Assembly: GCA_002269645.1 (NCBI GenBank)
Contig: NIVC01000704.1
Span: 246,996-310,995, forward strand
Origin: Macrostomum lignano
Taxonomy: Eukaryota
Direction of reading: 5' to 3'
DNA: 64,000 bases
The notes beneath the pieces are model-generated. The model searched no databases. It saw nothing but the letters and a program-made list of their open reading frames with translations, and was not told where the DNA came from. Below are positions 12,271 through 35,851 of this stretch, piece after piece (within the stretch, counting starts at the first letter, position 1; each line of letters opens with the position of its first letter). Made by a program: the position numbers and the translations under genes.

Positions 12271-12869
<599 letters not shown>

Positions 12870-12967: not shown

Positions 12968-13007
12968 TTATTGGCTGTCGGGCGTGTATTATCAGTAAGT
13001 GACGTCA
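12968..13007. promoter_or_regulatory. Candidate POLR1E promoter elements: CCAAT box and full CRE
   Basis: ATTGG near 12970 and TGACGTCA at 13000-13007, about 950 bp upstream of the POLR1E ATG. Motif match only. Confidence 0.35.
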
Positions 13008-13440
13008 TCACCGATGCGGGGATAGCACTTCATTGGGAGAACTGAATAGACACGATATATATTTTAAGATGGGCGGCATGGATAATCATTCGATCAAAAC
13101 GCGGTCGCTCTTGGGAAGCAATTAACTCAGTCAGAATCATAAACTGAATCAAGTATTGACAGCGGCGGCAGGTAAAAAAGCACAATACAATAACGAAAAA
13201 AACTATATTTATATCTTATAAGCCGAAGCTTAAACAGGGACGCGACCGTGGATCATTCCATCACTATCTGCATAAGAAGTTTGTCTAATTGAACAAGTCT
13301 AAAAAACAGGATTTGAATGTTGTATTCATTTTATTACTTATCTACAAAGACACTTATCTTAGAAAAGATATCCAAACGGTATTCCTAAAAGGAAATTCTT
13401 AAGAAGTAACAGAATTCAATCATTTTCTCTAAATAGGGAA

Positions 13441-13830
13441 TCTAAAGGTACATTCCTAGAAAGGGAGTTTGGATGGGAGTCTAAAGGTACATTCCTAAAA
13501 AGGGGAGTCTAGAATGGGAATCCAAAGGTACATTCCTAGAAAGGGAGTCTGGATGGGAGTCTAAAGGTACATTCCTAAAAAGGGGAGTCTAGAATGGGAA
13601 TCCAAAGGTACATTCCTAGAAAGGGAGTCTGGATGGGAGTCTAAAGGTACATTCCTAAAAAGGGGAGTCTAGAATGGGAATCCAAAGGTACATTCCTAGA
13701 AAGGGAGTCTGGATGGGAGTCTAAAGGTACATTCCTAAAAAGGGGAGTCTAGAATGGGAATCCAAAGGTACATTCCTAGAAAGGGAGTCTAGAATGAGAA
13801 GCTTAAGGTACATTCCTAGAAAGGGAGTCT
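13441..13830. repeat. ~30-bp minisatellite with a ~61-bp dimer (aaaggtacattccta...gggagtct)
   Basis: Alternating unit variants are visible. Confidence 0.92.
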
Positions 13831-14545
13831 AGAATGTGAACTCCTATTTAGTTAGGCTTCTAAATGGGATTTGCTAGAGGTGGAATGTAGGTAAGGGAGG
13901 GCAATCCATCCTATTGGGGCAGAGGAAGTTCGTAGTTAGGGAAACTACCGCAAGTTGAGACGGCACATGCATGGCTTGAAAACAGAAATGTATATACGCA
14001 TCATGATATGCATGCAAACTCGAGTACCAATATAATGAATTGAACCATAAATATAATATAACTAATTAAAAACACACAACCCCGCCGCCAGGAGCTTGAA
14101 CCAGCTCCGAATGTGTGGCAGGAGAATGTAAACTTGAATATAGCGGCTGAATATTGGGGGGGGGGGGGCGGATCTGTACTGAACTATTGTAATCGGCGGT
14201 GCAAACATATATATACTGTATAACCATTTCATAATTACTACTATTAGTAGATCCGAATTCGCTGACAAAACTCTATTGAAAGCTGCTTGCCAAGTCCAAG
14301 CAAACAGTTCTGAATTAGAAGGACGCGGAACCGCCTCCATATTTAAAAAAAACATAATTGTACATAAAAATCGGCCTTCAAAAAGGCATTTAAACAATTT
14401 CAACAGTGCCTAGTGATCAGTCATTCCAATTAAGAAATCGTAGGCCGAGTACAGGTAGGATTCAAAGGTTATTGTCATTAAAAATGGAAAGCAGGAGTAC
14501 ACAGAGAGACACAGTGATTCGATGAGCCAAGTTCGGCCAGCCAGT

Positions 14546-15799
14546 TCAGGTCATGGCACCGAACACCGGGTTGTGCCGGCAGATGCTGGCTCCGTATTCC
14601 ATATACTGCTCCTTGGTGTGGGACACCGAGTAGAACTCGTTGGTGGAGGCCACCAGGGAGCCGCCGAACCAGACAGCGTAGCGCTGCTTGGCGTGGGAGA
14701 AAACGTTCACCTCGATTGGGGTCGGCTTCTGGCCGCTGAACACCTCCACAGCCTTCAGGCGGCTGTCCGATGCTCGCTTGATGTCGCGCTGCAGCCGTTT
14801 GCCGAGGTCTTTGAACATGCTGGAGCCGCCGCTCAGCACGATGTTCTTGTACAGGCCGCGCCGGTTGTCGATGGGGCAGGCCTGGATCACGTTGTCCACG
14901 GCTTCGGACAGCGGAGTCTGGAAGTCCGGGTTGGCAAACTCCGGGTGGAAGAAGATCTCGGGGGCCAAGAATCTCTCGTAGCCGACATCCACAGTGAACG
15001 GGGCATTGTTGATGGGGTTGATGCTCGTGTACGTCTTAATCCACTTGGAGCTCTCCGCGTCGTACTTGTTGAACTCCTTCGCGATGTCCGGGCACACGTA
15101 GCAGTAGCGCTCCTTGATGGCCTTGGCGGTGTCCATGCTCATGTCCGGCGGGATGCCCACCTCGCGTTCGCGCAGCAGCTGCTGAATGAAGAAGGTGATG
15201 TCGCGGCCAGCGATGGGGATATGCTGGATGCAGCTGCCGATGACGTAGCCGTCGGCCACCGGGATGACGTGGGTAACGCCGTCGCCGGAGTCGATGACAA
15301 CCCCGGTGAGGGTTCGCTCGCCCTCCGGCCTGGTGGTCCAGCTGGCGGCCAGGGCCAGCACCGCCTGCACAGCGATGTACAGTCCAGGGACGTTGAACGT
15401 CTCGAACATTATCTCCGCGGTGTACTCCCGGTTCTCCGGGGTGTTCAATGGTGGCTCAGTCAGCAGGAAGTAGTGATCTTCCGGCTCGGCGCGCAGGTAC
15501 TTGAAGATAGCCTGCTCGTAGAAGCGCTCCATCAGGTCCCAGTCGTCCACCTGGCCGTGCCGGATCGGCCACTTGGTGGCGTAGCTGCTGGCCACCGTCA
15601 GCGCCTCGTCGCCGATGTAGAAATTCAAATCATCCAGGCCGGTGCCGAGGCGCCTGGACTCCTTGGTGCCAACTTTGGCAGCCTCCTTGATGCCGATGCA
15701 GCTGGGCATAATGAACTGAGGCTCGCTGTTGCCAGCGTAGCCCATCTTGGAGTAGCCGGTGCCGTTGTCAATGACAACCGCTGGAAGCCTGCCTGCCAT
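14546..15799 (-). CDS. ACTR3: Actin-related protein 3 (Arp2/3 complex), intronless CDS of 417 aa
   Basis: [55 protein letters not shown] and the C-terminal [13 protein letters not shown] are diagnostic of ARP3. Confidence 0.98.
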
Positions 15800-15979
15800 G
15801 GCTGCTGGAGCAGCGGGGGGAGATGTTTGTTTTCATGCTTTTGTATCACTTTTATAGCTTTGCACAGACCGCTTTGAGTTGTGGGAATGTCCTCTAGGGA
15901 ATCTTTGAGACCCAGGTCACAAAACTACTAAACATGAGATCCTCATCCCGGTAGTACCGAGCCCCATGATTCTGGCCTT

Positions 15980-16620
15980 AAGGAAGCTTTTTATCCCAAT
16001 CCTGTTTCTGAATTCTCCTGATCCCATTCCTGATTCCATTCCTGATCCCCAAATATTCTGATCCCAATCCCGGTCCCCAAGTATCCTGATTCCAATCCCG
16101 ATCCTCAAATATCCTGATGATAATCCCGGTCCCCAAGTATCCTGATCCCAATCCCGGTCCCCAAGTATCCTGATCCCAATCCCGGTCCCCAAGTATCCTG
16201 ATCCCAATCCCGGTCCCCAAGTATCCTGATCCCAATCCCGGTCCCCAAGTATCCTGATCCCAATTTTGATCCTCAAATATCCTTATCCCAATCCCGGTCC
16301 CCAAGTATCCTGATCCCAATCCCGGTCCCCAAGTATCCTGATCCCAATCCCGGTCCCCAAGTATCCTGATCCCAATCCCGGTCCCCAAGTATCCTGATCC
16401 CAATTTTGATCCTCAAATATCCTTATCCCAATCCCGGTCCCCAAGTATCCTGATCCCAATCCCGATCCTCAAATATCCTGATCCCCAATCCCGATTCCTA
16501 AATAAACTTATCCCCAAATATCCTGATCCCAATCCTGATTCTTAAATATACTGATCCCCAAATATCCTGATCCCCGAATTTCCTGATCCCAATCCCGATT
16601 CCTAAATATACTGATCGCAA
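15980..16620. repeat. ~28-bp minisatellite (atcctgatcccaatcccggtccccaagt)
   Basis: Tandem copies upstream of ARP3. Confidence 0.92.
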
Positions 16621-17084
16621 TCACGATTTTCAAATATATTGAACCCGATTCCTAAATTCCCAATTCCGATTCGTGTGGCAAAGCTCTGCACCAGTTGGCA
16701 ATATACAAGACGCCGAATTCGCACAGCTCAGTGATAATAACGATAACTGCCTAGCAACAGAGCGCGTTCTTTCAGTCTTCTTTACTTGTACTTTAAATGT
16801 AAAAAATCGCAATCAATACAATACAACACCGAAGGTGAGAACTAAATTTAAAGCAATTATGTCACGTAGAAAAATATGAAAAAAAACTTGTCCAAAACGG
16901 CAGGGTACACAAGCGGCAGGGTAGGCAAGGGAAGAAGGGGTCGGGGTCGCGACAGAAGAAAGACCGGCAGCGCTGAACGAAACAAAGGAGAGTAAAACGG
17001 TAAAACAAAAAATAAAGAGAGGAAAAAACCTTCTACTTAATCAAAGATGCGCGCGCGCGCGCCTCTCACGACTGCAGCTACAGG

Positions 17085-17600
<516 letters not shown>

Positions 17601-18739
17601 GTCAAATTCCTTTCAGCGACCACTCAAATACTGGTAGAGAACTCGACTGGCTGTGCGGACAGACCTAAGCCCAGGGCACAGGACTGATATTGGTCTTCTG
17701 CAACTGGATAAGTTTGTAAGAGCGCTCCAAAGTGCCTTTTTCATACACGATAACGCATCAACTTTATTAGTCGTAGGTGATGAGCAATGTGGACAATAAA
17801 TGTGGGGTTTCTGTGGGGTTGCACTGGGGGGTGTTTGGTGTGAAACGTACTCGCAAGAGACAGACTGATGGAGATTTACAGGGCTCAAAAAATCAATGAC
17901 ACTGGGTATCACGCAGCGAGGCAATGCAGTACAGCAGGTCGAATGAAACACCTCAATAGGTGAGTTTCAGGGCACTGAAAATCTATCTTATATATAACAT
18001 ACAAATTGGATAAGTCACATAGTCTTTCATAGTACGGACCGCAATACAGGTAAGCCGAGCCGAGCAAGTCCTGAAATAGTGAATGGTGATGATCGAGACA
18101 GACTGAATACACACAGGACAGGTCATTAGAGAGGCCGCCAAAAGTACACTATAATCATATTTATCATCCCATGCCAGCTGCCAAACGGGAATTGCCGTAG
18201 AACGATGATCAAATGAAAAAAGCAAACAAAAACAAAAAAGCAGTCAATTCAAGCTCGGAGAAACCGCTGGCCAAACAGCAGTTCAGATAGCCAATTTCAG
18301 CAATCAAGTTTTACAAGAAAACACAGGTACAACAAGGAGCAATTCTAGATGGAAATACGATATTAACAACGAAAGTTTGGTGCGGACAGGCGCCGTGCTG
18401 ACTTTAAAAAACAGATCTCGGGGGATTGCAGTCGGTGCTAAAACTCGGCGCTCATTTTACTGAGAAGGAGTGGCCGGGACTGCTTATGAACAGGTGAGGT
18501 CAGGTCATGCACAGGCTCTGTGGCTATTCTATTCATGCGCTAATGCATTGACGCAGAATCTGCGGTACATGTGTGTACAGTGCTCAACACTCAAGAGAAA
18601 AGAAACACAACGCAACGCTTGTTATAGTGCGTTGAGATGTCGGGGCAGGGGGGGGGCATTGCGGGTGCATGCGGGAAATGCGAGACACAGCGGGCTAGCA
18701 GGTGCTGCACATTTCTGACTGACTGGCGGGCCGCGGAAG

Positions 18740-21651
18740 CTACGAGGCGATCCAGAAAACGCCGGCCAGCAGGGCCAGCAGCACCGGCAGGACCCGGCGG
18801 CGAGCAGCAGGCGGCTGCGGTTGGCGGCGGCCCGGGCCTCGGCGCGGCAGTCGGCCAGCTGGCGGTCGCAGGCGGCCCGGAGGTCGCGACGCCGCTGCTC
18901 TAGGTTGGCGCGCTCGTCACGGCCGGCGAGGGCAGTCAGCTCGGCGTCGGTAATCCGCGCCGCTAAGCTGTCGCAGTCGGCCAGAAGCTGGCGCCGCCTG
19001 TCGGCCTCGAAGTCCAGGCTGGCTCGAAGGTGCGCAGTTTCGGCGTCGACTTCCTGCAAAGCGGCCTGTAGCGTCGGCGACGACTTCAGCAGCGGCTGCA
19101 GCAGCTGGCGCTCTGCTTTCTCTACGGCGATCGGATCGGCTCGAAGGCAGCGAAGGAGGTCGAGCAGCCAGGCAGCGTTCTGCTGGCCATTCGAGCCGGG
19201 CGATGGCGGCCGAGGCAGCTGCTGGCGCGGCCGCTGCTGGCGGAGCTGCTTCTGGGCCTCCAGCTCGAGCATTCGAGTCTCCAGCTGGTTGAGGCAGGAC
19301 AGAGCCGACTCCAGCCGGGTGTGGAGGTCGTCGACTTTGGCCGAGGAGGCGTCCAGAGACGCCTGTTGGTCGCGCAGCTGAGTCTTGCACGCCTGAGGGT
19401 TAAATGCATTTGCGGTGTTACACTAGCTGCTCCCATTCTGATAATCACTGCATCATTAAGAAAGGTGATATTGAGTAAATAGGTCCTGAGAACTTGTACA
19501 TACTACACTGCACTAAAACTGTTCAATATCTATGCCATGGGTCAAAACATGGAATTAACATTCACAGTTTCATTCAGAGACGAGGGCTTGTGCGATTTAC
19601 GCTCAAAATGAGGACCAACCCGCTCACTTCTAAGCACATACAAGCTTAGGATGAGGATCAACACTGTACGAAGACCCGCACTTACATACACGCTCACAGA
19701 CGGTGGGTGTACAGTGGCCCTGACTTTCAGTCATGTTTTAATGAGAGTCAGTCACGCACAGTGTGCCTTGGCGTTGGCCTTAATGAGTGTGACTGAGAGT
19801 CAGTCACGCACAGTGTGCCTTGGCGTTGGCCTTAATGAGTGTGACTGAGAGTCAGTCACGCACAGTGTGCCTTGGCGTTGGCCTTAATGAGTGTGACTGA
19901 GAGTCAGTCACGCACAGTGTGCCTTGGCGTTGGCCTTAATGAGTGTGACTGAGAGTCAGTCACGCACAGTGTGCCTTGGCGTTGGCCTTAATGAGTGTGA
20001 CTGAGAGTCAGTCATGCACAGTGTGCCTTGGCGTTGGCCTTAATGAGTGTGACTGAGAGTCAGTCACGCACAGTGTGCCTTGGCGTTGGCCTTAATGAGT
20101 GTGACTGAGAGTCAGTCATGCACAGTGTGCCTTGGCGTTGGCCTTAATGAGTGTGACTGAGAGTCAGTCACGCACAGTGTGCCTTGGCGTTGGCCTTAAT
20201 GAGTGTGACTGAGAGTCAGTCACGCACAGTGTGCCTTGGCGTTGGCCTTAATGAGTGTGACTGAGAGTCAGTCATGCACAGTGTGCCTTGGCGTTGGCTT
20301 TAATGAGTGTGACTTTTGGCAGACCGCCAAATCTGCATGAAACATGAATTATTAACAATAATCTGAGTTTAAGACCGACCTGCAGTTGCGCCTTCAACAA
20401 GTCCGCCTGCGGCCCTGTTTGCGGCGCCGGGGCACCCGAGTCTGCCACAGTTTGCGCTTCGGCGTCCGCTCGTTCGACGGCTCCACTCCGCCCAGACTGT
20501 GGCTCTCGCTGACCGTCGTTCAGAGCCTCGCCCAGTTCTTTAATTCGTGACTTAAGAGAGGAATTGCGCTCCATCTCTTTGGCCAGCTGGGAGCTCAGCT
20601 CATCTAACTCCTGCGCCAGCCGCTCGCCGAGCTCGCGCAGCCGGTCCTCGGTGCGGTCGCGCTCCTCCCGCAGGTGCTGGCACTCGTCTTGGCTGTCGCG
20701 CCAGGCCCGCTCAAGCTCGCCGGCTCTATGGACGGCGGCGCCGCACTCGACTAGCGCGGTTTCTAGGCGCCGCTTCAGCGTCTCCTCGGCAGCGGCACCG
20801 GCACGAACCGCAGCCGACAGCGAGTCGCCAGCAGCGGCTCCGTCGCGGTCGTCAGCATCGCTGTCAGAGTTGACACCGGCAGCGGCTACCTGGGCTTCAA
20901 GTAGCTCAAGCCGCTGCGTCAGCTGCTCCTGATCCAGCACGGTTGTCCAGGCGCCCGCGCTAACGCCAGCTATGGAGTCAAGAAGTTCGCGGAATTTGTC
21001 CAGCTTAACGGTGAGCAGACGCTCCCTGTGCAGCGCCTCCTGCAGGTACTGGCTGAGCTGGTGCACCTGCTCCTGGCTCACCGTGTTGGCGGCCGCCGCT
21101 GCTGCTGCCGCGGCTGCCACCGCCTCGGCGTCTGCTTCGGAACCGGGCGGCACAAACGCGGAGGCAGCGGAGCTCAACGAGGCGGAGTCCGGCCGCTTGT
21201 CCTCGCTGCCGTCTGCGTGGTACAGAAACACGGAGGCTATGACGCAGCCGTGGGTGACCTTCTTGGAATTTTCCACCACTTCAACGCCGAACTGGACGAT
21301 GTCGCCGCTAAGCAGTCGGCGAGGCGGGCTTTCCTCGTTGCCTTTGCCAAGCCGCTGATTGTTAACGTAAGTTCCATTGCTGCTTTTTGTGTCCTTCAGC
21401 CAGAACTGGCCGGACTCATACCACAGCAGGGCGTGGTTCCGGCTGAGCACCTTGCAGTCGAATATGGCATTGTCGATGGAGGGCTTGGACTTGGCCACGG
21501 ACCGGCCGATCTTCACCGCCTCCTGGCCCAACGGCACCCGGCGCTCTGAGAACGGGTGCGACTGCGGCAGTGACTTTAAGCAGACCACCGGCAGGTCTTC
21601 GAGTCCGTTGTTCAACTCATCGACGACGTCGAAGACCTTGCATTCGCGCAT
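18740..21651 (-). CDS. SLMAP: Sarcolemmal membrane-associated protein (FHA domain, coiled coil, tail anchor); exons 21651-20380 and 19392-18740, with an apparent 1-nt frameshift at 18793-18795
   Basis: FHA segment SHPFSERRVPLGQEAVKIGRSVAK..NAIFDCKVLSRNHALLWYESGQFWLKDTKSSNGTYVNNQRL is SLMAP-type. The phase-0 intron spans 20379-19393. The hydrophobic tail VLPVLLALLAGVFWIAS* lies in a shifted frame. Confidence 0.9.
19742..20312. repeat. 52-bp minisatellite in the SLMAP intron
   Basis: About 11 near-identical copies of gagagtcagtcacgcacagtgtgccttggcgttggccttaatgagtgtgact. Confidence 0.95.
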
Positions 21652-22035
21652 AGCGACCTCTTGCTGTTGCTGCTGCTGCTTCTGTTGCTGTTTCTGTTGC
21701 TTGCGCCTCTGGCTGCTTTTGGTGCCGCCTGGGTCGCGTTTCACATCCTGCGATACCTGGAATCGATGCGGATGCAGATTTTATTTCTGCTATTTAAATT
21801 ACTACTGACAGAGTAGTAGACTACTAAAATAAAAGCCTACACACTAAAAGCTTAAAAAACTATAACTAAGTATTTGCGCAGACATTAGAGAAAAAAGAAA
21901 GGCAACGAGAAATCAATTCCAATTCCAAGTCGAAACTGACTCAGCCCTCTGATTTATTCACAGCCCGTAGGCCGCGAACACACAAGCAGACCAGCGGAAG
22001 CAGTCAGCGCAAAACCTGGAACACACATCGCCTCT

Positions 22036-22386
22036 TCACTTGGCCACCGTGACCTCGACCTCGACCTCCGGCTCGATGCTGATGCTGGTGATCTGCTTGA
22101 CGGTCTCGGCGGGCGACTGCAGGTCGATGAGCCGCTTGTGCAGCCGCAGGCGGTACCGGTCCCACGTCTTCGAGCCCTCGCCGCACGGAGTCTTGCGGGT
22201 CGTGAGGCTCAGAACCTTCGTCGGCATCCGCACCGGCCCCTTCACTGGCAGGTTCTTGTCTTTGGCGCCCTTGATCAGGTCAGCGCACACCTTCTCCAGG
22301 CTGCGGACATTCTTTGACGTCAGCGTGATGCGGATCCGGTGAACCTGCGCCGACTGCAGCTCCTCCTTGCCGTCCTTGGCGTCCAT
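22036..22386 (-). CDS. RPS20: 40S ribosomal protein S20 (uS10), copy 1, intronless
   Basis: [32 protein letters not shown] and [15 protein letters not shown]. Acceptor at 22461; AATAAA at 21953-21958. Confidence 0.98.
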
Positions 22387-23959
22387 GGCAACTGTTGCTA
22401 GGCTGACTGGATTATCGAGAGTGACTGGCCGAGATACTCAGGTGAAGCAGCGCTGAGCCAGCTGGAAGGAAAGAAGCAATTATAGTTAGTTTCATAGATT
22501 ACAAGCTCATACATCTATCTAAGAGACAGACACTACTATAGTAGGGAAATGCACATTTGGAAAGGAAAATATTTAATAATTAGACTGAAAATTTAATAAT
22601 ATACCTTTGCGCAATTGAATTCGTCTAAACTGCAAAGCCTTTCGCCCACTAATGCTTTCTTAATTGAGGGCTGAATTTCGATCATACCATAGACAGCTGC
22701 GTTCACGCAAAAACGTTTTATCAATTCAATTCAGCCATTTGAATAAATCTATGAAAATAGCTCCCGAAAAGGCATGTTTATACATAAAATCTTTCTCTAA
22801 GCCATTATATCTGCCGTGAACAGTTTGCAATGTTCAGCTTTACCTGTTCTTGGCACAAACGTGAATGATGCTAGTAGTTAGACGCATCACTACAATAACC
22901 CTAATTCTGACTTCTCTATACTGATAGTGCAGTAGTATAAAGTGAAGCTGAATAATCATACTTCAATACTTTGGTTTGACAGACCGTCATAGTATATTTC
23001 TAACGCATTATCTATGACTATTAACCAATTATAATTCCACGAATACTTCAAACACTGCTTCTAAATTAAATGCCAGCTGAGAGTGAGCTTTCTGGGTTGG
23101 GAAGCGGTTTGGAGCAGGATTGGCCATAGACTAGCCTCATATGGAAAAAGTTGTAAGTTGCTTTAGGCATATAACGATCATACTCCTTTACCGTGAATTT
23201 GCTGAGACATATATCAGCTATCCGTTTGATGCGACGTAGGACAACTCCGATGTGCCCTAAAGTTGGGACGGACATAAGCGTTTTTTACCACAGACTATCT
23301 TCTGTCGTGAAACACTTCACTCTTAAGTTCGAGCGTTTCTCTCTTTGAGTCGCATCTAACTTGGATCCCAGCCAGGATCAATTTTTAGTTTAGTGATGAA
23401 ACAGCCACATACTAACCTCGGGCCCAGTTGGAACCTAAGATCAAACTTTGCTTTTTGAAACACCCCAGACCCCAATGCCTATCTGCACTAAACGCTGCTC
23501 CCTATTAGCGAAGACGCGCCTGGCCAATCCAATGCCCACCGCACCGAATGCATTTTTGCCAACCCATCAAGCCAAACAATTAAATAGCGGCCGGGCGGAC
23601 CCGGGAGGGGCCAGACAGAATCGGCGTTATTTTTAGCTCCTATTTCCTGCAATACGAAGGGGGCGAACGGTTGGCAGCGAGCGGTGCACCTTGCTTGCTG
23701 CAAGTATGAAATGCAGATAGAAATGCCAGCCCATTCACCTAGATATAACTGCCGCCTGATTCCCCCCAGATGCAAATGACGCTAAGAAAGCTGCCGCAGT
23801 CAGCGGCAAAAAAGAAGACGGAAGAGCCCTGCAGTTTGTCCAAGGCAGCCGAAATGCGACTCTCTCAGCCCTCTAATTTATTCACAGCCCGTAGGCCGCG
23901 GACACACAAGCAGACCAGCGGACGCAGTCAGCGCAAAACCTGGAACACACATCGCCTCT

Positions 23960-24310
23960 TCACTTGGCCACCGTGACCTCGACCTCGACCTCCGGCTCGA
24001 TGCTGATGCTGGTGATCTGCTTGACGGTCTCGGCGGGCGACTGCAGGTCGATGAGCCGCTTGTGCAGCCGCAGGCGGTACCGGTCCCACGTCTTCGAGCC
24101 CTCGCCGCACGGAGTCTTGCGGGTCGTGAGGCTCAGAACCTTCGTCGGCATCCGCACCGGCCCCTTCACTGGCAGGTTCTTGTCTTTGGCGCCCTTGATC
24201 AGGTCAGCGCACACCTTCTCCAGGCTGCGGACATTCTTTGACGTCAGCGTGATGCGGATCCGGTGAACCTGCGCCGACTGCAGCTCCTCCTTGCCGTCCT
24301 TGGCGTCCAT
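23960..24310 (-). CDS. RPS20: 40S ribosomal protein S20 (uS10), copy 2, intronless
   Basis: Same 116-aa protein as copy 1. Acceptor at 24385; AATAAA at 23877-23882. Confidence 0.98.
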
Positions 24311-24641
24311 GGCAACTGTTGCTAGGCTGACTGGATTATCGAGAGTGACTGGCCGAGATGCTCAGGTGAAGCAGCGCTGAGCCAGCTGTAATTAAAAACA
24401 CATATTGTCTACAATACATTCTATTTTCCTAAAAGGTTAAACTGCCAAACTAAGGCGAGCTACGATATAATAAATGAATGCAGAAGACACATTTGCTGGG
24501 TACAATCTTATTAAAAGCATTTATTAGGAGAATAGCGCATGAGCAGGGCACAACACATCATAGTTAAACAGTAGCCGAACAGCTATGTACAGATCAGAGA
24601 GTTTAGACACGCACTAGCAGTCAAAAGCACTAGCAGTTAAT

Positions 24642-25070
24642 TTAGTATCGATATTTGGTAGAATAATCCTTGGGCGACACCACCAGACCCCGGCCTTTGC
24701 GGGCGCCCCTGAACACTGTCTCGACTATGTCGATAAACTCGCCAGTGTCCTCGACAGCCCAGTTGATTTTGTTATTATTTCCGGTGCCCAGGTCGATCAT
24801 GATGTGCTTGTTTCTGTAGAAGAACATCACCGTGCAGGGGTCGTAGAGTTCGTACATCTTGTTGAAGTTTGGCACCTTCTGAATGTCAACAAGGTAAATG
24901 ACGGCAAAGTTTTTAACCTTCTCGGCCACTTTAAACAGAGTCTCGTCCATGACCATACAGGCGGGATCCCAGTCGTGTCCGAACCGAATAATCACGAGCC
25001 GATCCTCCTCGGACAGAATGGCCTGGTCCACCTGCCAGCCATTGGTGAGGTGGGGCAGCATGTAAGACAT
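24642..25070 (-). CDS. TXNL4A: U5 snRNP thioredoxin-like protein Dim1, 142 aa, intronless
   Basis: MSYMLPHLTNGWQVDQAILSEEDRLVIIRFGHDWDPACM ... GLVVSPKDYSTKYRY. Acceptor at 25093; AATAAA at 24520-24525. Confidence 0.98.
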   Translation of the reverse strand: MSYMLPHLTNGWQVDQAILSEEDRLVIIRFGHDWDPACMVMDETLFKVAEKVKNFAVIYLVDIQKVPNFNKMYELYDPCTVMFFYRNKHIMIDLGTGNNNKINWAVEDTGEFIDIVETVFRGARKGRGLVVSPKDYSTKYRY

Positions 25071-26633
25071 GGCTGAGGGCTTGCGCAATCGAGCTGGAAA
25101 ATGGATGCGCAATATGTCTTGTATTAACTTGAGCGTTATTTTACTTCATCATTCAAACTGTGTCATTCAAACACATTTGTTCTGCAACCCAATCATAATT
25201 ATTGCCATGAAAAATTGAAAAGTGCTTCGGGTGCTGTGTAGATGCTTATATTTCTGCCTAGTACTGAAAACAAAATGATACTTTTGGCACCAAGCCAATT
25301 AATGATAAGATCATTTTTGTCTATACTTTTCAGTTGCTTTTTTGATACATTTTCCACAGAAACTACCAAGAACACTCTGTTGCCAGAAACCATGTAGAAA
25401 ACAAAAATGCTCATCCCATAGTATAAAATTATAAAAACATGCAAAACATGAGTTTGTTTTAACAAAAATTGTTTTCTCTGTGTTTTTAGGTTTTTTTAAT
25501 GGTCTAATAATTTAATTTATTTTTGTCTCTTAATGTACAATTATTGACCAGACTGAACCCATTCGTCTATTGCCTTGTACAGTTTTTGATTTTATTTATT
25601 TATGTAAATATACGGAATTGTGAATCATGAGTGCAAGCCCTAAAGATGACCGCTTGTGTTGAAACACATTGGCTATAATAATAATTTTCTTATATGTTGG
25701 TGTTGGCCTTCATTTCTCTATTATTTATTAAACAAGCATCTCTACCAAAATGTTACTACTGGGTTGACTCTAGTTGCAATTTTTTCTTTATTTTCTCTCT
25801 ATTTTATAGTTGCCTTTCTGTTTTTTTCTTTCCTTTTCACTCTTATTTTCTCCTTGCCTTGTTTATTTGTCTTCCTTTTTAGCATTTTTGGGAGTGAGAA
25901 CAATTTTGCTACTTACCTTGGCTAGTAGCCTCTGTCTAACTAATTTAGACAAGTTTTGCACAGATATTTTTAGTTATAAATAACTTATGTTTATAAAAAT
26001 TTCTATGCAAATTAATTTTCTCAAGATATCATTTGATTAATAATTTTTTACTCCTTTGGATTGTTCCATACAATAATGGTTGTAACATTTATAGCAATAA
26101 ATATTTACAAAGCATATATTCATATAGTGAGGAAAGGCATAAAAATTAACAGAATTTAATTGGAAAAATGTTTTATAGGCACAATGCTACTATAGAATCT
26201 TCCTTGTTTTTATGATCTTATAATCATAAAATTATAGCTGTAACATAGTTTGTAAAAAATTCAGTACAATTTGTAGAAGGGGGAGCAGATTTTGGAGGGT
26301 AAAGACCTTTGGGAGGGGGTGGAGAGGGTGGCTCTACATTTTGGCAAAAAAATTGCTTGGTCTCCCCTTTGACTTTTTCTAGTCTCTGCCAAGAGAGGAG
26401 AAACCACTTCCCCATCTACCCTGGTTGTGCCACTGAAAAAAAAATGTGAGCTATTTTGAATGATTATGATTTCCTTTATGTAATTTTATAGAATTAAACA
26501 ATGCATTCAATAGAAAAGATCACTATTATTCTCTTGTTGAAGTTTCAAGGCAAAATTTATAATTAATGATTAGTTATAGTTAGTCTAATTAGTTTAGTAT
26601 AGTTAGTTTAAGTTTGTAACTATAAGTCAATAT

Positions 26634-27498
26634 CAGTGTTGGGCAAGTTACTCAAAAAAAGTAACTTGCGTTACTGTAACTTAAGTTACCAATTTTTAAA
26701 AAGTAACTTACGTTAGCCTAGTAACTTTAGACAAAAACCCGGTAACTTTTAAGTTACTGTCCGTTACTCACTTCCGTTACCCATGTTATTAACAAAATTT
26801 TCTGCTTTTTTCACATTGCATTTTTTTACATTGTTGTTACCGAAATTTGCCATTGGGCATTGGGATTAACCGATTAACAGACAGAGACAGCAATTGGCGA
26901 CACGATGTGAGGCAAGTAGAAGGACCGATGGGCAATGGCAATCAATAATTAAAATTATAAATGATAAAATAAACGAATATCAATAATTCAATAGAGTAAA
27001 ATAAATAACTGTATAAAATGGTGTAGTGTACTGCAGTGCCAGTGGAGGGACTTGTGGAGGCTACAGACGAATTTCTTTCTTTGGTTGTTTGTTTGAATCA
27101 AACTTGAAAATTTTTAGTAAATTGAAAATGAGAAATAAAAATTGAAAAATAAAATGAAAGGCGAAAATATTTTACTGAAATTATAACTAAGCAAAACATG
27201 TTTTAAGTATTTCTTCATTAATTAAAGCGCAATACCAAATGATACTATTCACTTAATTTTGAATTAGGAATGAAAAATGCAAAAAAATGTGACAACCGGC
27301 GTAATAGCTAAGCATTTCAGTTTTAAATTTAAATATTGCGATTGTTGCAAAGTAACTGTAACGGACTTCTGAAATTTGAGTAACTTACCGTTACTCCGTT
27401 ACTAAAATAAAAAAGTAACTTGCGTAAGGAACGCTTTACGAAAAAGTAACTTGCGTTACCATTTGCAAGTTACTCGGTAACGGAAGTGCCCAACACTG
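26634..27498. mobile_element. Non-autonomous hAT-type DNA transposon (MITE), 865 bp
   Basis: TIRs CAGTGTTGGGCA / TGCCCAACACTG. Perfect 8-bp TSD GTCAATAT at 26626-26633 and 27499-27506. Many subterminal GTAACT/AGTTAC motifs at both ends; no ORF. Confidence 0.92.
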
Positions 27499-30400
27499 GT
27501 CAATATCCTAAAGCAGAATAAAATCAAATCAACCAAATATTTAGTTTGAATTTGAATTGCAAAATTAATTATCCAAATACCAAATAGTCACTTTGATATA
27601 GAGCAAAGGTTTAGATCAAGTGTTGGTATTGTGGCTCATAAATGAAGAGAAAAAAATAGGGATAGTTGTATTTTAAGGAAAGGTAAAGGGATTAAAGGCA
27701 TAACAAATTGAATATGTTTATGTTGAAAAGACTTGAAAAGCCTTTAGAAAGAATCGAAGCCTAAGAACCTTAAGTTTAAAAAGTCAAGTGTTAGGGATTA
27801 TAGGCTTTTGGTTATATGTAAGGCTAAGGGGAGGGAATTAAGGATGGGAAAACATAGTCTTAAGGAAAAGCAAGGGTGCTTAAGCAATTGTGAACATATT
27901 ATATACTTATATTTGAGGCTTTAGGAAAAATGGAGTATTAATAATCAAGTTTATATAACATAGATTTGGGGGGGGGGGCATTTATTTCTATAAACTCAGA
28001 GGATATCTGTGCTTTTCAATGCCTATGCTTTTTGGTACCTAGCATTTTGGTACTCATTTGCTTTTCAATACCTTAATTATAAACTAAAAATATATAAAAA
28101 TTATAGAAAGTAGATATTAATCTAAAAATGAATGCTCAGCATTTTTGCTGAAAATAAAAAAATATTTTTCTTTAAGTTTTTATTTTTAATAAAAATTTTC
28201 TTTTTTTCCTAATGATTTGATATTTCCATTAGTCTATTTCTAATTCTTAGGCCTAGGTCTCTTTATAGTAATCAATAAAAAGGGCAATCCTTTGGTTTAC
28301 ACTTTCTATTTGGCCAGTTTCAGTTTATAATCACCTTATATTTTGCTCATTGTAGTGCGAAAATGGTGTGTTCAAAACTGGCTGACAAAAAATGCAAAAT
28401 TGAAAGTGTGATTTGTTGGATGATGCTTATTTATCAGCTTTGATATACAATCATTTGAATATGTAATGCATATAGAAACAATTATGAACCAAAGCTGGGT
28501 TAAATCAATACTGTATATAATGCACATGCATTTAAGGTAAAAGTAATATTGCCAGCTTTGGTTTAGGATCATTTCAGCAGAGTGCATGTGTGGAAATGAT
28601 TGTAAACTGAAGGTGAGAAAGGGTGCGAAGGTAAGGAAAGATTTTGATACCCTTAATCTAGAAAAAGTAGCAGTTTTTTGCATGTGACTATTTGTCATAT
28701 TTGACACACCTTCTTATAGCCAGCTTTGGTTTATAATCATTTTAATGGGCAACAAATTTGGCTGATTGCAAACCAAAAGTGATAGATATTATAACCTACA
28801 ATAATCTTACCATCCTTTGAAATAAACAAAGTTAGTTTGCCAACTTTTGATTTCTTTCATTTGAAACCATTGTTGGTTTTTATATTTTTATGTAAAATTA
28901 TAAATATATATAGAATATATAGTTTTTATGTAAAATTATAAATATATATAGAAGGCCTCTTTTCTTTTATTTGTACACAAAATCTAACTTTCTATGCTAT
29001 TTTAAAATTTGCATGTTTTTAGGAAAACAATTTGTTTTAATATTCATTTCTCAAAATATTTTTGAAATTTATTTTTTGTTATAAATGAACTGAAATTTTA
29101 GTATAAATAGACATGAATTTTAGGCGAGGAGAGGCATGTTTGTTGGAGCTTTAAATCAGCCTTCAACTTAATGGTTAGTTGAGAAATCTTTTAGTGAATT
29201 CCAAAGAAATATTTCAAGAAGTGTTTTTCCATGTTAATTCATTTTCTAAGTGAAGTGAAATAGAAGGAAGAGCATATAGTATATACTACTGAGAAATAGA
29301 ATGTTGGAAAGAGAAGAAATACGAAGTAGATCTCAAAACATATAAAGGGCCATGACCCTCTAATCCTAGTAACTCTCAGGACTGGAGAGAACATACATCC
29401 AGTATATATACCAGTAGACTAGGCCTATATACTACTTAGGCCAGAATAACAGTAAGAATGCTACAAGAATAATAGTGAGAATACTACGAATACCAGAATA
29501 ACAATAAGAACACTACGAGAATAATAATAAGAATGTTACCTGTGAGAACATATACCAAGAATGATACTCAGAATAATTTGCAGACTAATACTCTGACCTA
29601 TGCTTAGATTATTAAATAAATATACTTAGACAAATGCTCAGACTTATACTAAAAACTTTAATTTTCTTAGACTTATTCTAGGAAAATAAATTCATAATAG
29701 AATAGTCTTGGCGGCAACAATAAAACATTTAAGAGACAGAAAAAAAGCCTATCACAACTTTGATGGCAGTTTATAAGATTTCCTAGCATATAGTAAATAT
29801 GCCTATAACAACTTGGTGGCTTAATGGTGAAATTTTCAAGAGAAAACAATCAGCTCTGTAACATGTAATATATAATTTCAAATAATATATATATAGCATA
29901 GGCCTAATTAATATATAATTATAAAAATATAGTAAATATTAAATACAATGTTAGTATTCATATGTATATAATATTAAAAGGAAATATCTGGACTGTATAT
30001 CTTATTCTTAAAAATATTTAAAGTAAAGATTTTGAATCAGTTTTTAAAAGTACAAGTGTCAATGTCAAGTATATCTAAAAATTCAAAATATTACCCAAAA
30101 GACCCAAAAAATTTAACTTAAACCTTTTTGTTTACTATGAATAAACTCTGCAACAGGAAAACAAATGCGTTATCATCATTGGATGGAGGTGGGGCCAGGG
30201 ATCATACTGTTATTGTTTTTTGTCATTTTAAGTCAATACTGTTTATGTTCAAACGAAAAATTAATTTAACAAATGAAAGAGGAAAATTGCCCTATATTTT
30301 TCTTTTTCTTTTTTAGAAGTTGTTTTGTCTGCTGGCAGACAAAAAGGTAGCAGACAAAATGACTGTGCACCAGCCACACCACATTGTTTGTGGCCTGGCT

Positions 30401-32091
30401 TGCCTATAGACTAATGTCAATTGATGACTAAATTAATGTTTACATTTTAGTTTCCTTTATCTTAGGCTGCTAGAGTGCTAGGCCCATTTCTGACAGAAAA
30501 AACAACTCAATAGAAAATTATATCATGGAGATTAAGAGATTATGCCCTAGAATGAGATGGATCATGGATGCGAGTCATGGGACTAATAAAATAGAATTAA
30601 GTCCTGAACCTTAGACAGATAAATTAAGGGCCGAGAGTAGAAGCAAACTATATATGCTCTAGCATGAGTAGCATAGCCAGAATCATATTAGTGCAGGTTG
30701 TGTTAATTATGGCGCGAGAGAGAGCTTCCCCATTGTTGCTTTCTTGATAGCTCTACGCTTCTGAGTAGAGAAATTTCCAGTTTGAATATCGAATAATGAC
30801 GGTTTAAACAAGTACCGTAAGCTGATAAATGAAGTTTTTCGGATCTTTCATAAGTGATTTTTTTCTCTCTGAATGATTAAATATTTTGTTATACTGCTTT
30901 AATTTTTAATTAAATGTAGGTTAACACGATAACCTACAAAATAACGAAAAAGCAATTATGAAACTACAACTAGATGAACTAGCAGAAGAAAAGGAATTAA
31001 AATAAACAGTTTTTATAGGTGTAAACAACTTTGTTTTTTATGTCTTAAGTAAATGACTGAACGAATAACTTAATGGTCGTTCTCTACGTTGAGTATTCTC
31101 AATTTAAGCTACATCATGAACCATTCATGCACTCACTTTGTCATTTGTTTTACAGCAGACACCACTGTAACAATGACACAAACACGGGCACAAAATACAC
31201 AATAGTTTGTGGAAAAATGATTTCATTTCCTATGACTACTGCATCTTCGTTGCATCGTTGCTTCGTTGCTTTGTTGCATACTGCATCGTCGAGTGTTGCG
31301 GTAACTTTTAGTTGGATATCCTATATGTAGAATCCTAAATTTCCAGCCTTTTAAAGTAAATTTACGCCCCTTAACTGAGTTTTGATGACTGTATATAAAT
31401 CATATTTATATGCACTGATTTTCGTTTCGCGTTTATAATATAAGGCCGAACTTATAAGCTTATGTAAGCTTACACTTGATTGCTGTTGCACTGTTGCTTG
31501 GGTATAAGCTAATAAGGCCGAAGAACATACATGCAGATTTCATATTTTTCATACTACTTGATCTATGCCACTCATTGAATGCGTTGTCGTAGAATCTAAT
31601 GTGAACTGGACGAAAGTATAAGGTCGAGGTTAAGCTACAGTACTAAACTCAATTTTTGTATAGCTACGATCGAGTGTACAAAACAACCACTATTCTGCTT
31701 GGTCTGCTCTTCCAATGAAAACTTTCGATCATATAGTTAACATTACTGAAAATTCTTCAATTACTGATCATTAAATGAAATAATCTTGTTTTCTTTTACC
31801 ATCTGGCTTTAATCATACGCGTTTATTGTTCGTGCAAAATTAATTACAAATCTCGAGAGTTCTATTAGAATGAGTGCCATAAACCTCGCGCGAAAAATCA
31901 ATAAAATTGAGCAATCAAGTTTGTGATTCATGCAAACAGATTTCATAGCATGTAGTTATTTATTTAAAACAATTCACGATAAAAATTTTGCTTTGGGGTT
32001 GGGATACACATTTATCGAACTTTAGTTATGCTAGTTATGCCTCAATGTTCCGGCAACTTCCTCAGCTCAAACTGCAGGAAAACTGCGGCTG

Positions 32092-33204
32092 CTAGTTGCA
32101 GGACGCGCTGTTGCAATTCTCGCACTTGCAGTTCTCGCACTTGCAGTTCTCGCACTTGCAGTTCTCGCACTTGCAGTTCTCGCACTTGCAGTTGTCGCAC
32201 TTGCAGTTCTCGCATTTGCAGTTCTCGCATTTGCAGTTCTCGCATTTGCAGTTCTCGCACTTGCAGTTCTCGCACTTGCAGTTCTCGCACTTGCAGTTCT
32301 CGCACTTGCAGTTCTCGCACTTGCAGTTCTCGCACTTGCAGTTGTCGCACTTGCAGTTCTCGCATTTGCAGTTCTCGCATTTGCAGTTCTCGCATTTGCA
32401 GTTCTCGCATTTGCAGTTCTCGCATTTGCAGTTCTCGCATTTGCAGTTCTCGCATTTGCAGTTCTCGCATTTGCAGTTCTCGCATTTGCAGTTCTCTCAT
32501 TTGCAGTTCTCGCATTTGAAGTTCTTGCACTTGCAGTTCTCGCATTTGCAGTCTTTGCACTTGCAGTTCTCGCACTTGCAGTTCTCGCACTTGCAGTTCT
32601 CGCATTTGCAGTCTTTACACTTGCAGTTCTCGCACTTGCAGTTCTCGCACTTGCACTTCTCGCATTTGCAGTCTTTACACTTGCAGTCTTTGCATTTGCA
32701 GTTCTCGCACTTGCAGTCTTTACACTTGCAGTCTTTACACTTGCAGTCTTTACACTTGCAGTCTTTACACTTGCAGTCTTTACACTTGCAGTCTTTACAC
32801 TTGCAGTCTTTACACTTGCAGTCTTTACACTTGCAGTCTTTACACTTGCAGTTCTCACATTTGCAGTTCTCGCACTTGCAGTTCTCGCACTTGCAGTTCT
32901 CGCATTTGCAGTCTTTACACTTGCAGTCTTTACACTTGCAGTTCTCGCACTTGCAGTCTTTGCACTTGCAGTTCTCGCATTTGCAGTCTTTGCACTTGCA
33001 GTTCTCGCACTTGCAGTTCTCGCATTTGCAGTCTTTGCACTTGCAGTTCTCGCACTTGCAGTTCTCGCATTTGCAGTCTTTACACTTGCAGTTCTCGCAC
33101 TTGCAGTCTTTGCACTTGCAGTTCTCGCTCTTGCAGTTCTCGCACTTGCAGTTCTCGCACTTGCAGTTCTCGCACTTGCATGTGGGGCAACTTGGCTTGT
33201 CCAT
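32092..33204 (-). CDS. Giant Cys-rich metallothionein-like protein: MDKPSCPT-(CKCEN/CKCKD)x71-CNSASCN*, 370 codons with an in-frame TGA at 32497-32499
   Basis: The single frame has a unique N-terminus with ATG (33204) and a unique C-terminus ending in TAG (32092-32094). About 140 Cys in a CxCxx periodicity, with no aromatic residues except one Phe. TATA box about 100 nt upstream; AATAAA about 125 nt downstream. Confidence 0.72.
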
Positions 33205-33302
33205 TGTTAAAAGGTTAAACAATAAGCGTCGCAGAGCTCAGATCGGAGAATCCTCTTTTTCCTATCGCTTCGGGCTTCTCCGCCAGCCCAGCTGGGGGGT
33301 TA

Positions 33303-33383
33303 TTTATAGGCCACCCGCCTAGGTGTCTCGCAGCGATAACGTTTCTTTCTGCGCAACTTTTCGTCAGGTTTTGTCCCACGTGA
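33303..33383 (-). promoter_or_regulatory. Promoter of the metallothionein-like gene: TATA box and E-box
   Basis: Minus-strand CTATAAATA (TATAAA at 33308-33303) and CACGTG at 33378-33383. Confidence 0.55.
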
Positions 33384-33804
33384 CCCGCACGAATGCGCTG
33401 CTACGCGCATCTACTGAAGTGACTGAGCCCGGACTCACATTAATGGGAGCGCATTCAGTGCATTTGGCTCCCAGCTTTCCGTAGAGGCTTCACAATTAAT
33501 GTGAGCCATGCATGGGTTTCTGGGAAACACTTCACACCTTTGGATGTTGGTTCCCAGAAATGGGGCCTAGCCGTCAAAATTGTCTCTGTTGGAATTGAGC
33601 TGATTTCCCAGAAATGGGGTCAAAGAGCATGGCCGTTTGGGAAGCATTTTCTATTGCCAACTGGCATGACTTGAGGTGTGCCAAGCAGAAATTTGTTCAT
33701 TTTGCTGCACTTCCGATTCAACTACACACCGTGTGTTTGCTGTTCACGAGACTTCGAGACTTTTGCTTGCTGATAAACAGATTGAATAATTGAATAGTAT
33801 GCTC

Positions 33805-34445
33805 ATAGGCCTGCTACTGCCTGTGACAGATACTCATAGCAAAGCTCATAGGCCTGCTACTGCCTGTGTCAGATGCCCATAAGTCCATAACCCAGCTAAT
33901 GCCAGTGTCAGATGCTCATCATAGCCCAGCTACTGCCAGTGTCAGATGCTCATAGCAAAGCTCATAGGCCTGCTACTGCCTGTGTCAGATGCCCATAACC
34001 CAGCTATGCTAGTGCCAGATGCTCATAGACCAGCTCATAGTTCTGCTACTGCCTGTGTCAGATGCCCATAAGTCCATAACCCAGCTAATGCCAGTTTCAT
34101 ATGCTCATAGCCCAGCTCATAGCCCAGCTCATAGCCCAGCTACTGCCAGTGTCAGATGCTCATAGCAAAGCTCATAGGCCTGCTACTGCCTGTGTCAGAT
34201 GCCCATAACCCAGCTAATGCCAGTGCCAGATGCTTATAGCCCAGCTACTGCCAGTGTCAGATGCTCATAGCAAAGCTCATAGCCCAGCTACTGCCTGTGT
34301 CAGGTGCTCATAGCCCAGCTCATATCCCAACTCAGAACCCAGCTCATAGGCCAGCTACTGCCTGTGTCAGATGCCCATAACCCAGCTCATATCCCAGCTC
34401 AGAACCCAGCTCATAGGCCAGCCATTGCCAGTGTCAGATGCTCAT
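33805..34445. repeat. Degenerate composite tandem repeat (cccagctactgccagtgtcagatgctcatag)
   Basis: Recurring 10-30-bp modules. Confidence 0.8.
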
Positions 34446-34552
34446 AACCGAACTGCATGGTATAACATAGGGATTGAGAAATCTATGGAAGCATCCAGCC
34501 TCAAGTCTTAGATTTACACCGTATGATTGAATGCACTAAAGCTGCATGCGGC

Positions 34553-35089
34553 TCAGGTTTCCACAACAGTCAACTGCCTTGAACTGTCAACACCCAGTTG
34601 TTCACTCCCTGAAGCAGTCGCTATCCGCAGTCTCTGGTGTTGCGCCTCACTGTTGCGGCGGCTGCTGCAGTCGTCGGCCGGCGAGGAGTCGCTGCGCTGG
34701 CCGCCTCCGCTGCTGCAGCCGCTGGTGCTGGCGTCTCCAGCGCCGCCAGCCGTGATATTCGACTGCCGGCTGCTGTCCCTCCGCGGACCGCCGCCAGGTC
34801 GTGACGAAGAGGACATCGACGAGGACATCCTGGTCCACCGGCTGCCCGGCCGGGACGCCGACGACCACATGGCGTTGATCTCGGAGCGGTCAGCCTCGGT
34901 GCTTCGCCAGATGACGCCCTTCTTCACCAGCAGCCACAGCACCAGGCCGACAGCGGCCGCAGCCAGCAGGAAGGCGCAGACGAAGATGAGGGCGATGCCC
35001 GGCACGGTGAGGCCGCCTGCCTCCGAGGACGTCTGCAGCAAAGCCTGCGGGCTGGTTGCGTTGGCGGCCTCATCGGGTGCTGCGGCCAT
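34553..35089 (-). CDS. Uncharacterised single-pass membrane protein with a Ser/Gly-rich cytoplasmic tail (~178 aa)
   Basis: Hydrophobic segment GIALIFVCAFLLAAAAVGLVLWLLV followed by KK. GC3-rich codons; AG acceptor 4 nt upstream of ATG 35089. The ORF is open to 35248, so the start is uncertain. Confidence 0.65.
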   Translation of the reverse strand: MAAAPDEAANATSPQALLQTSSEAGGLTVPGIALIFVCAFLLAAAAVGLVLWLLVKKGVIWRSTEADRSEINAMWSSASRPGSRWTRMSSSMSSSSRPGGGPRRDSSRQSNITAGGAGDASTSGCSSGGGQRSDSSPADDCSSRRNSEAQHQRLRIATASGSEQLGVDSSRQLTVVET

Positions 35090-35851
35090 TGCGCTGCGGT
35101 CAGCCCCGCCGGCATTGCCGGGCAGTTTTATCGAGCTGGTCAAAGCGGATTTGAGCAAGCCGACAGCCAGCTTTGTCTCTATGGCCCAGCCAGTCCAATT
35201 ACCGTCAGCCCTAAGCCTTTGAAGCGGATACAAGTCAGTGTTGCTCATTGAGTTGGGAAACTCTTTTTTTGAGCCTGTGCTGTTGCAGCGCTCGTTATGA
35301 AATTATCGCTAATTGCTGTTCAGAATGGTGAACCGGGCGTTCATTATTTATGAATTTTATCGTAAAATAGCATTCTGCTCAGCGAAATTTGTATATTTTT
35401 AACTGAAAAAAATCTATAAACGGAAGACAAAAGCGGAAATTCGATTGAAAAAATCTCACAGCACCGACAGGAAACTGGGTCAGATTCGGTGAAAAAATGG
35501 AAGACACAGGATGAGTTGAGATTAGTGCACCAGCGATACAAACAGGTTTTGCTTATATAAAACAATTCTTTGTACTTGGGTTTGCTATGTACAAAAATAT
35601 TGATTTTTTTCCAAGCTTACATGTGCGTCATGAAAAACGACAATTGAATATATAACTTCTTTTCTTTGAAATTCTTTGAAATGATCATACATTGACTTGT
35701 GAGACAAGCCTAACCAGCTGTGTACTAACCGCGCCCAAACTCTGCTTAACCTGCAGCTGCTGACAGCGATTGGGGAAAACGGGAGCTTGAAGCCACAGAC
35801 AGTAAATCTCTATAAAAAGCAAACAGACAATTAGTTTTCTTTCTGACTTTC

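Follow-up and report, generated by a model that had tools for sequence, protein, structure and literature searches.

A 15-bp array with an interrupted cysteine-rich frame

The final 64 kb of contig NIVC01000704.1 of the flatworm Macrostomum lignano (GCA_002269645.1), here called the window (64,000 nucleotides; record coordinate = window coordinate + 246,995), harbours a 15-bp tandem repeat that reads on its minus strand as a cysteine-rich open reading frame (ORF). This array, a candidate metallothionein-like gene, was analyzed together with its paralogous copies. Tandem Repeats Finder (TRF) reports a single array at 32111..33180 with a period of 15, 71.3 copies and 0% indels. From the ATG at 33204 the minus strand encodes a unique head (MDKPSCPT), 71 phased units (33180..32116) and the tail CNSASCN followed by TAG, in agreement with an earlier note on this DNA. 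The consensus units are TGCAAGTGCGAGAAC and TGCAAGTG(C/T)AAAGAC. At the protein level CKCEN is found 44 times, CKCKD 20 times and CKCDN twice among the 71 units, and CKSEN, CKCEK, CKCKN, FKCEN and CK*EN occur once each. The tail, with its TAG at 32094..32092, resembles approximately 1.5 degenerate units. The flanks of the array are unique within the window.

The earlier note described the frame as 370 codons with about 140 Cys. The Cys count stands, since the 370 conceptual codons (TGA ignored) contain 142 Cys (38%), but the frame itself is stopped by an in-frame TGA at codon 236 (unit 46, CK*EN). Because of this TGA the longest ATG-started product has only 235 amino acids (aa), namely 90 Cys, 69 Lys, 24 Glu, 24 Asn, 21 Asp and one Phe among others, and no His. 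The TATA box TATAAATA at -104, the ATG and the AATAAA at +128 lie on one strand and in the proper order, which supports a gene; both elements had been noted at ~100 and ~125 nt, respectively, and were located close to these distances. Upstream ATGs are absent from the leader, and A at -3 and G at +4 are present in the start context AACAATGG (Table 1). Further upstream, 310-410 nt 5' of the ATG, three STAT/GAS-like nonamers TTCNNNGAA are present in a local repeat CCCCATTTCTGGGAA (window 33518-33613); they are kept in the paralogue.

Table 1 Features of the 15-bp array and its surroundings (window coordinates; MRE, metal response element; UTR, untranslated region; L002, L003 and L007, paralogous loci described in the text)
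Feature	Position	Strand	Remarks
TATA box TATAAATA	33301..33308	-	104 nt 5' of ATG; same in paralogue L002
Inferred 5' UTR	33205..33278	-	Start site assumed ~30 nt past TATA box
Start codon and unique 8-codon head MDKPSCPT	33181..33204	-	Identical in L002, L003 and L007
71 phased units C-K-C-(E/K)-(N/D)	32116..33180	-	TRF and translation
TGA in place of Cys codon, codon 236/unit 46	32497..32499	-	ORF ends at 235 aa
Cys-to-Ser codon AGC, unit 4	33127..33129	-	Coordinates from unit phase
Cys-to-Phe codon TTC, unit 45	32518..32520	-	Adjoins TGA unit; coordinates from unit phase
Tail CNSASCN and TAG	32092..32115	-	Identical in L002 and L003; reached only with TGA ignored
AATAAA poly(A) signal	31959..31964	-	128 nt past TAG; conserved in L002
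MRE-like core TGCGCTC (consensus TGCRCNC)	33447..33453	-	Single core
Antisense ORF (LQFSH/LQSLH)n, no ATG	32096..33322	+	Open over whole array

Paralogues were located via the neighbouring C-type-lectin and DIM1 genes. Loci L002 and L007 are both NIVC01000598.1, and L003 is NIVC01004553.1. L002 (= L007) and L003 retain the promoter region and the poly(A) signal as well as head and tail, which again supports a gene. The copy on NIVC01000598.1 has 83 units; its TGA, at codon 364, takes the place of the first Cys codon in a unit and results in a 363-aa product. On NIVC01004553.1 the array counts 84 units between an identical head and tail, with the TGA unit and the Tyr variants of L002; its product is approximately one unit longer than the 363 aa of NIVC01000598.1. 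There are two array lineages, each with its own premature stop. The flanks of the copies are 95-100% identical to those in the window, whereas the interior unit order is scrambled. With 71, 83 or 84 units of 15 bp between such flanks the locus is a minisatellite by definition, and its length is variable among copies, as had been predicted. These unit numbers and the scrambled order between near-identical flanks indicate that copy number changes fast and always by whole units. Conservation of the flanks was also considered as a signal of constraint, and was discarded because 95-100% identity everywhere is too high to be informative.

The repeat itself is certainly beyond chance, unlike the ORF taken by itself. 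Considered jointly, the TATA box, the start context, the poly(A) signal and the use of all-preferred codons in the ATG frame are probably beyond chance, according to a rough estimate over all arrays of the window and both strands (~58 array-strands). Outside the AT-rich block described below, each strand has TATAAA at ~4e-4 per nt, which gives a chance of ~0.04 for its occurrence in a given 100 nt. A[A/T]TAAA was found within 400 nt past the stop in two of six minus-strand ORFs checked (the candidate and five neighbours), i.e. the candidate (+128) and DIM1 (+117). The codons of the ATG frame (TGC, AAG, GAG, AAC and GAC) are all locally preferred, as judged from five neighbouring genes. The GC content of its third codon positions (GC3) is 1.0, compared to 0.73-0.88 in these five genes; the antisense frame likewise has a GC3 of 1.0.

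Composition, homology and variation of the units

In composition the predicted product is metallothionein-like, as had been proposed. Cys accounts for 90 of the 235 residues (38%), compared to ~15-35% in an operational definition of metallothioneins, in a strict CxCxxCxC register, giving the CxC and CxxC spacing of metallothioneins. Lys adjoins Cys in the sense frame and contributes 29% of the residues. The only aromatic residue in the 235 aa is a Phe at a mutated Cys codon; His, Tyr and Trp are absent, and in the paralogue five Tyr have arisen by Cys-to-Tyr changes. The size of the product (235 aa, ~26 kDa, 370 conceptual codons) is outside the low-molecular-weight range of classical metallothioneins (<10 kDa), and is matched only by exceptional multi-modular metallothioneins such as OdiMT2. 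No support came from curated metallothionein models, none of which scored above threshold, or from two large protein libraries, in neither of which a homologue was found.

In Pfam searches with the whole ORF no metallothionein family was found at E <= 0.01. The best match of a 68-aa head segment was Metallothio_Euk (PF12749), with 15.3 bits against a cut-off of 22. PF25296 ('Decapeptide'), with 34.8 bits against a cut-off of 45 for the whole ORF, was sub-threshold and was taken as compositional. BLASTP against human MT2A gave E = 3.4 and aligned the CKCK(D/E)C motif only. A word-indexed search among 5.8 billion clustered proteins revealed no homologue, and neither did HMMER among 1.84 billion representatives of ~15 billion proteins. 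The HMMER scan returned 939 matches, of which those inspected were unrelated low-complexity K/E/N pentad repeats; runs of CxCxx were present in only three among the best 150 of the 939. Exact-protein look-ups of the 235-aa ORF, ARP3, DIM1 and a neighbouring 231-aa ORF retrieved no entries; for ARP3 and DIM1 the reason is that different start codons were chosen in the deposited annotation. The gene was not found described in literature searched for peptide strings of the ORF and for Macrostomum or planarian metallothioneins. A scan for bacterial promoters and terminators was set aside as irrelevant for a eukaryote.

Variation among the units had been read as a sign of coding, since it seemed to fall mostly at synonymous or non-Cys positions. 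The unit types of the window and L002 were connected in a minimum-spanning network of 19 single-base steps. Third codon positions account for 13 of these steps, which first seemed significant. However, 17 of the 19 steps are at G/C bases, which in the unit cluster at third positions. With this effect allowed for, the third-position bias has a P of ~0.2 (own calculation); the test does not separate sense from antisense and was rejected. In the sense frame nine of the 19 steps are synonymous and two are nonsense, against a nonsense share of ~10% of possible single-base changes expected under neutrality (an estimate). Three of eight steps in Cys codons are synonymous. In the antisense FSHLQ frame ten of the 19 steps are synonymous and no stops arise; because its third positions coincide with those of the sense frame, this apparent conservation is the same G/C-site effect. 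Taken together, these counts gave no significant sign of purifying selection on single units. Mutation at G/C sites explains the third-position bias, which the antisense frame fits equally well. The only hint of constraint is that the synonymous variant TGT is common (23 units), whereas variants that destroy Cys are found in one to five units.

The candidate gene and its alternatives

The locus is tentatively interpreted as a young, lineage-specific, repeat-inflated and weakly constrained metallothionein-like gene giving truncated products, an interpretation to which we assign a probability just short of even. It would be a small, intronless, TATA-driven gene specific to the M. lignano lineage, the short Cys-rich coding region of which was inflated through minisatellite expansion of the 15-bp unit. 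The product would be cytosolic, without signal peptide, and of the form MDKPSCPT-(C-K-C-[E/K]-[N/D])n. Its CxC and CxxC thiolates, together with charge-balancing Lys residues, may chelate Zn(II), Cd(II) or Cu(I), and the metal capacity would scale with the number of units, amounting to roughly 30 divalent ions per 90 Cys if ~3 Cys per ion are assumed. The array would evolve by unequal exchange of whole units, and for this reason its phase would never be lost. As individual units would be weakly constrained, Cys-loss and nonsense changes would accumulate approximately neutrally, and each copy would therefore yield a truncated product, of 235 aa here and 363 aa on NIVC01000598.1. Units past the TGA would serve as 3' UTR. 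If selection is at work, its target would be a large number of units rather than the single unit, which would account for the tolerance of distal stops. Besides the landmarks, points in favour of a gene are the preferred codons, the metallothionein-like composition, the weak PF12749 match of the head segment, the unit numbers that differ between copies, short CKCxD, CKCGE and CDCED runs in predicted proteins of yeast and bacteria, and the precedent of OdiMT2 (PMC8283569). Transcription, translation and metal binding of the candidate are what we infer from its anatomy and composition. The locus is an attractive candidate, and its status as a giant metal-binding gene is unproven. A bolder version of this interpretation appears rather unlikely as a whole. 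It holds that the locus encodes an orphan poly-(CxCxx) thiolate polymer of a free-living flatworm, a ribosomal counterpart of phytochelatins with the finest modularity among known metallothioneins, in which capacity is set via minisatellite-style unequal exchange rather than domain duplication and stops are tolerated because any long prefix functions.

Several observations weigh against a metallothionein-like gene. Every assembled copy has an in-frame TGA, at two independent positions, and the TGA at codon 236 interrupts the window copy itself. Cys is lost to Ser in unit 4 (CKSEN) and to Phe in unit 45 (FKCEN) of the window copy, and to Tyr in a unit that is present five times on NIVC01000598.1. 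The third-position bias is explained by G/C sites, and the shares of nonsense steps and of synonymous Cys-codon steps are those of neutral change. The Pfam and library searches were negative. Only one MRE-like core was found in the 745 nt upstream, where ~0.4-0.7 are expected by chance (an estimate; the MRE consensus may not apply to M. lignano). In at least six other arrays of the window one frame is open throughout and is preceded by an ATG at a distance of 3-30 nt. Furthermore, NIVC01000704.1, NIVC01000598.1 and NIVC01004553.1 all lack a gene model for the locus in the deposited annotation. That repeat masking would hide such a gene had been anticipated in the earlier note, and with the locus unannotated in three of three copies repeat handling may indeed have hidden it. 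Short-read assemblers are expected to fail across a 15-bp array, and trypsin would cut the protein to CK, DCK and CENCK, peptides of two to five residues; absence from annotation and protein libraries is therefore weak evidence.

Quite possibly, if somewhat less so than a gene, the locus is an ordinary non-coding minisatellite, of which nothing is translated and in which the Cys-rich frame, ATG, TATA box and AATAAA are incidental. The window contains ~29 distinct tandem-repeat arrays, many with periods divisible by three. The absence of indels had been thought to set the candidate apart from other minisatellites. Indels are indeed absent (0%), but the same holds for 13 of ~25 arrays of roughly ten or more copies (count from the TRF table), so the contrast was not upheld. 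Open frames preceded by an ATG are found in the other arrays mentioned above, and three other frames of the 15-bp array itself are fully open, including the plus-strand ORF of 408 aa, while the proposed frame is not. Nonsense and Cys-loss steps near the neutral rate, unit order scrambled between copies with near-identical flanks, and a locus without annotation or homologue are what a non-coding array would show as well. Against this stands a coincidence of several features: the TATA box is strong and has the right distance and strand, the leader is clean, the start codon is flanked by A at -3 and G at +4, a poly(A) signal is present, and the ATG falls in one of two all-preferred-codon frames. 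By rough estimate this is unlikely by chance. A 39-bp minisatellite family, the two copies of which (window positions 10167-10621 and 63396-63902) are among the arrays with an open frame behind an ATG, contains ATG-started, fully open and Cys-rich ORFs, (SCSSPCCDWAA)n, of 162 and 179 aa, for which no Pfam match was found. As this family shows, striking 'ORFs' arise easily in arrays of this window. It is improbable, but worth considering, that a former small Cys-rich metallothionein-like gene has died and decays as a pseudogene in every copy within a recently duplicated genome. Independent premature TGAs in both array lineages, Cys-loss variants of which one has spread to five units, landmarks that are still intact and the absence of an annotated model agree with such decay. 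However, each copy has just one stop, past which the units are no less intact than ahead of it, and a polymer truncated at 63-84% of its length should retain its chemistry.

Other explanations accept that the array is translated. A real protein that is not a metal buffer is considered very unlikely, whether as a structural protein cross-linked by disulfides or as a beta-solenoid that resembles pentapeptide repeats and has Cys in its core. AlphaFold2 gave a regular, solenoid-like single-sequence model with two-residue strands (mean pLDDT, a predicted score for the local distance difference test, of 95.5), and there are weak matches to pentapeptide-repeat proteins (PDB 6fls, E = 0.02; PF00805, 10.9-12.8 bits). 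However, Foldseek found no PDB match for the model, the PF00805 score is under the cut-off of 20.2 bits, the central L/F of the pentapeptide-repeat consensus is replaced by Cys, and the signal peptide that would fit a secreted structural protein is absent. Beta-solenoid models of perfect repeats are a documented artefact of AlphaFold2 (PMC11795689), and together with the negative Foldseek search this led to rejection of the model as evidence for a fold, in spite of its pLDDT. Coding by the antisense frame (LQFSH/LQSLH)n has hardly any probability. It is open over the whole array with a GC3 of 1.0, and its steps include the ten synonymous ones and no new stops; yet there is no ATG in frame, only a bacterial-type TTG, the plus strand has no promoter or poly(A) landmarks, and sharing of third positions with the sense frame makes its statistics the same G/C-site effect. 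Recoding of the TGAs, by selenocysteine or readthrough, which would yield the complete 370-codon protein, is dismissed with the same near-certainty. A Cys codon has been replaced by TGA in each of the two lineages, but TGC to TGA is a single C-to-A change, and two TGAs among five non-synonymous Cys-codon events have a chance of ~0.12 (own calculation). No Rfam match at gathering score was found in the window, and no selenocysteine insertion sequence (SECIS) family at E <= 10 in 31300..33500; without a SECIS the selenocysteine reading was rejected. TGA-GAG and TGA-AAA are not among the known readthrough contexts, which also counts against recoding.

If the metallothionein-like gene is expressed, it would exemplify how metal-binding proteins may arise de novo, with a minisatellite as the direct generator of modules and a metal capacity that could be tuned on population time scales. 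It would bear on metal handling in flatworms, M. lignano being reported to tolerate cadmium up to ~330 uM (PMC11641670). If true, the interpretation would place a metallothionein-like gene in the Platyhelminthes, the parasitic members of which are reportedly without metallothionein genes (PMC3561135). An expressed gene of this kind would also be an example of one lost to annotation via repeat masking, breaks in short-read transcript assembly and tryptic over-digestion. If it is not expressed, the locus is a warning that minisatellite-rich genomes readily yield long in-phase 'ORFs' of striking composition.

The arrays of the window are interleaved with compact, mostly intronless-looking genes, i.e. 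ARP3, DIM1, an FHA/STRIPAK-like gene, RNA polymerase I A49, a Fez1-like gene and a C-type-lectin gene. ARP3 is intronless (14549..15799, minus strand) and is identical to M. lignano PAA47160.1 in 416 of 417 residues (99.8%), in line with the flatworm origin implied in the earlier note. Two loci of GCA_002269645.1, L006 and L008, match window positions 4546..25796 and 14642..35091, respectively, exactly in reverse complement. Two 116-aa ribosomal protein S20 ORFs (Pfam Ribosomal_S10) with equal Pfam scores are located on the minus strand between DIM1 and the FHA gene (22036-22386 and 23960-24310). No S20 genes were called in the matching interval of the paralogous NIVC01000598.1; the pair could be a lineage-specific tandem duplication or retrocopies. 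An AT-rich block begins right downstream of the candidate (window 26000-32000), with a GC content of 0.28-0.33 compared to 0.49 for the window, and is 92-94% identical in the paralogous contig. Between the candidate and the lectin gene lies a 231-aa ORF (34553-35248, minus strand) with one transmembrane-like hydrophobic segment as judged by eye; Pfam gave no match for it, and the deposited annotation calls no gene at this place. An RVT_1 reverse-transcriptase fragment (754-1308, minus strand), with ORFs continuing to ~2152, is located in the first, GC-rich 2 kb of the window and is probably the remnant of a non-LTR retrotransposon.

Comparison with known repeat and metal-binding systems

The candidate has much in common with non-coding minisatellites, i.e. 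15-bp head-to-tail units with interspersed variants, homogeneous sub-blocks and degenerate edge units, and a copy number and internal order that differ between near-identical flanks; the window contains ~28 other arrays. Unlike minisatellites, it is bracketed on one strand by a TATA box, ATG, stop and AATAAA, uses preferred codons only in its ATG frame, and has an extreme, functionally suggestive composition. With the pentapeptide-repeat proteins (PF00805; PDB 6fls and 2xt2) it shares a period of five residues with small residues alternately facing inward. It differs from them by its scores below cut-off, Cys in place of the central L/F and the absence of a Foldseek match to solved structures.

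The CxCxxCxCxx register with charged spacers is also found in a predicted yeast protein (P0161 from HE650825.1; CKCSD) and in two predicted bacterial proteins (P0215, CKCGE in ~14 copies, and P0251, CDCED). These proteins contain five to 15 pentads within larger unique sequences and come from unrelated organisms; their likeness to the candidate is compositional, not homologous. The CKCGE protein (L004, 536-1072; GCA_003324335.1, QMCE01005318.1) has a hydrophobic N-terminal segment that appears signal-peptide-like by eye, and a gene for a CzcB-like RND adaptor is located ~2 kb from its gene on the opposite strand, with three genes between. Judged by its sequence, this protein may be an independent metal binder built of CxCxx repeats.

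Phytochelatins, (gamma-Glu-Cys)n-Gly, offer an analogy only. Like the candidate they are polymers of Cys and acidic residues of which the metal capacity scales with n. However, they are synthesized enzymatically from glutathione with n = 2-11, whereas the candidate would be ribosomal and gene-encoded with n of ~45-84. Parasitic flatworms reportedly depend on phytochelatin synthase and have no metallothionein genes (PMC3561135). A review of planarian ecotoxicology describes upregulation of metallothionein under chronic metal exposure (PMC13253666). For M. lignano, lethality above ~330 uM cadmium and ~10 uM copper is given in a toxicology review (2024), in which metallothionein is unmentioned (PMC11641670).

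Multi-domain metallothioneins have been described in tunicates and molluscs (PMC8476144; PMC7826182; PMC7084494). OdiMT2 of Oikopleura dioica has 399 aa and 123 Cys, with three to seven repeat units between populations and premature-stop alleles (PMC8283569). The candidate shares no sequence homology with these multi-modular metallothioneins. Their unit is a folded domain or domain pair of ~30-65 aa with 11-12 Cys and a demonstrated metal stoichiometry, while that of the candidate has 5 aa and two Cys, in 71-84 minisatellite-like repeats that are interrupted in every copy. The likeness lies in their architecture. Both are very large for a metallothionein, with >30% Cys in CxC/CxxC motifs and a short unique N-terminal peptide ahead of the repeats. 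Both also display internal tandem duplication and a repeat number that is variable between alleles or populations, and premature stops occur in both, in the metallothioneins as known non-functional alleles.

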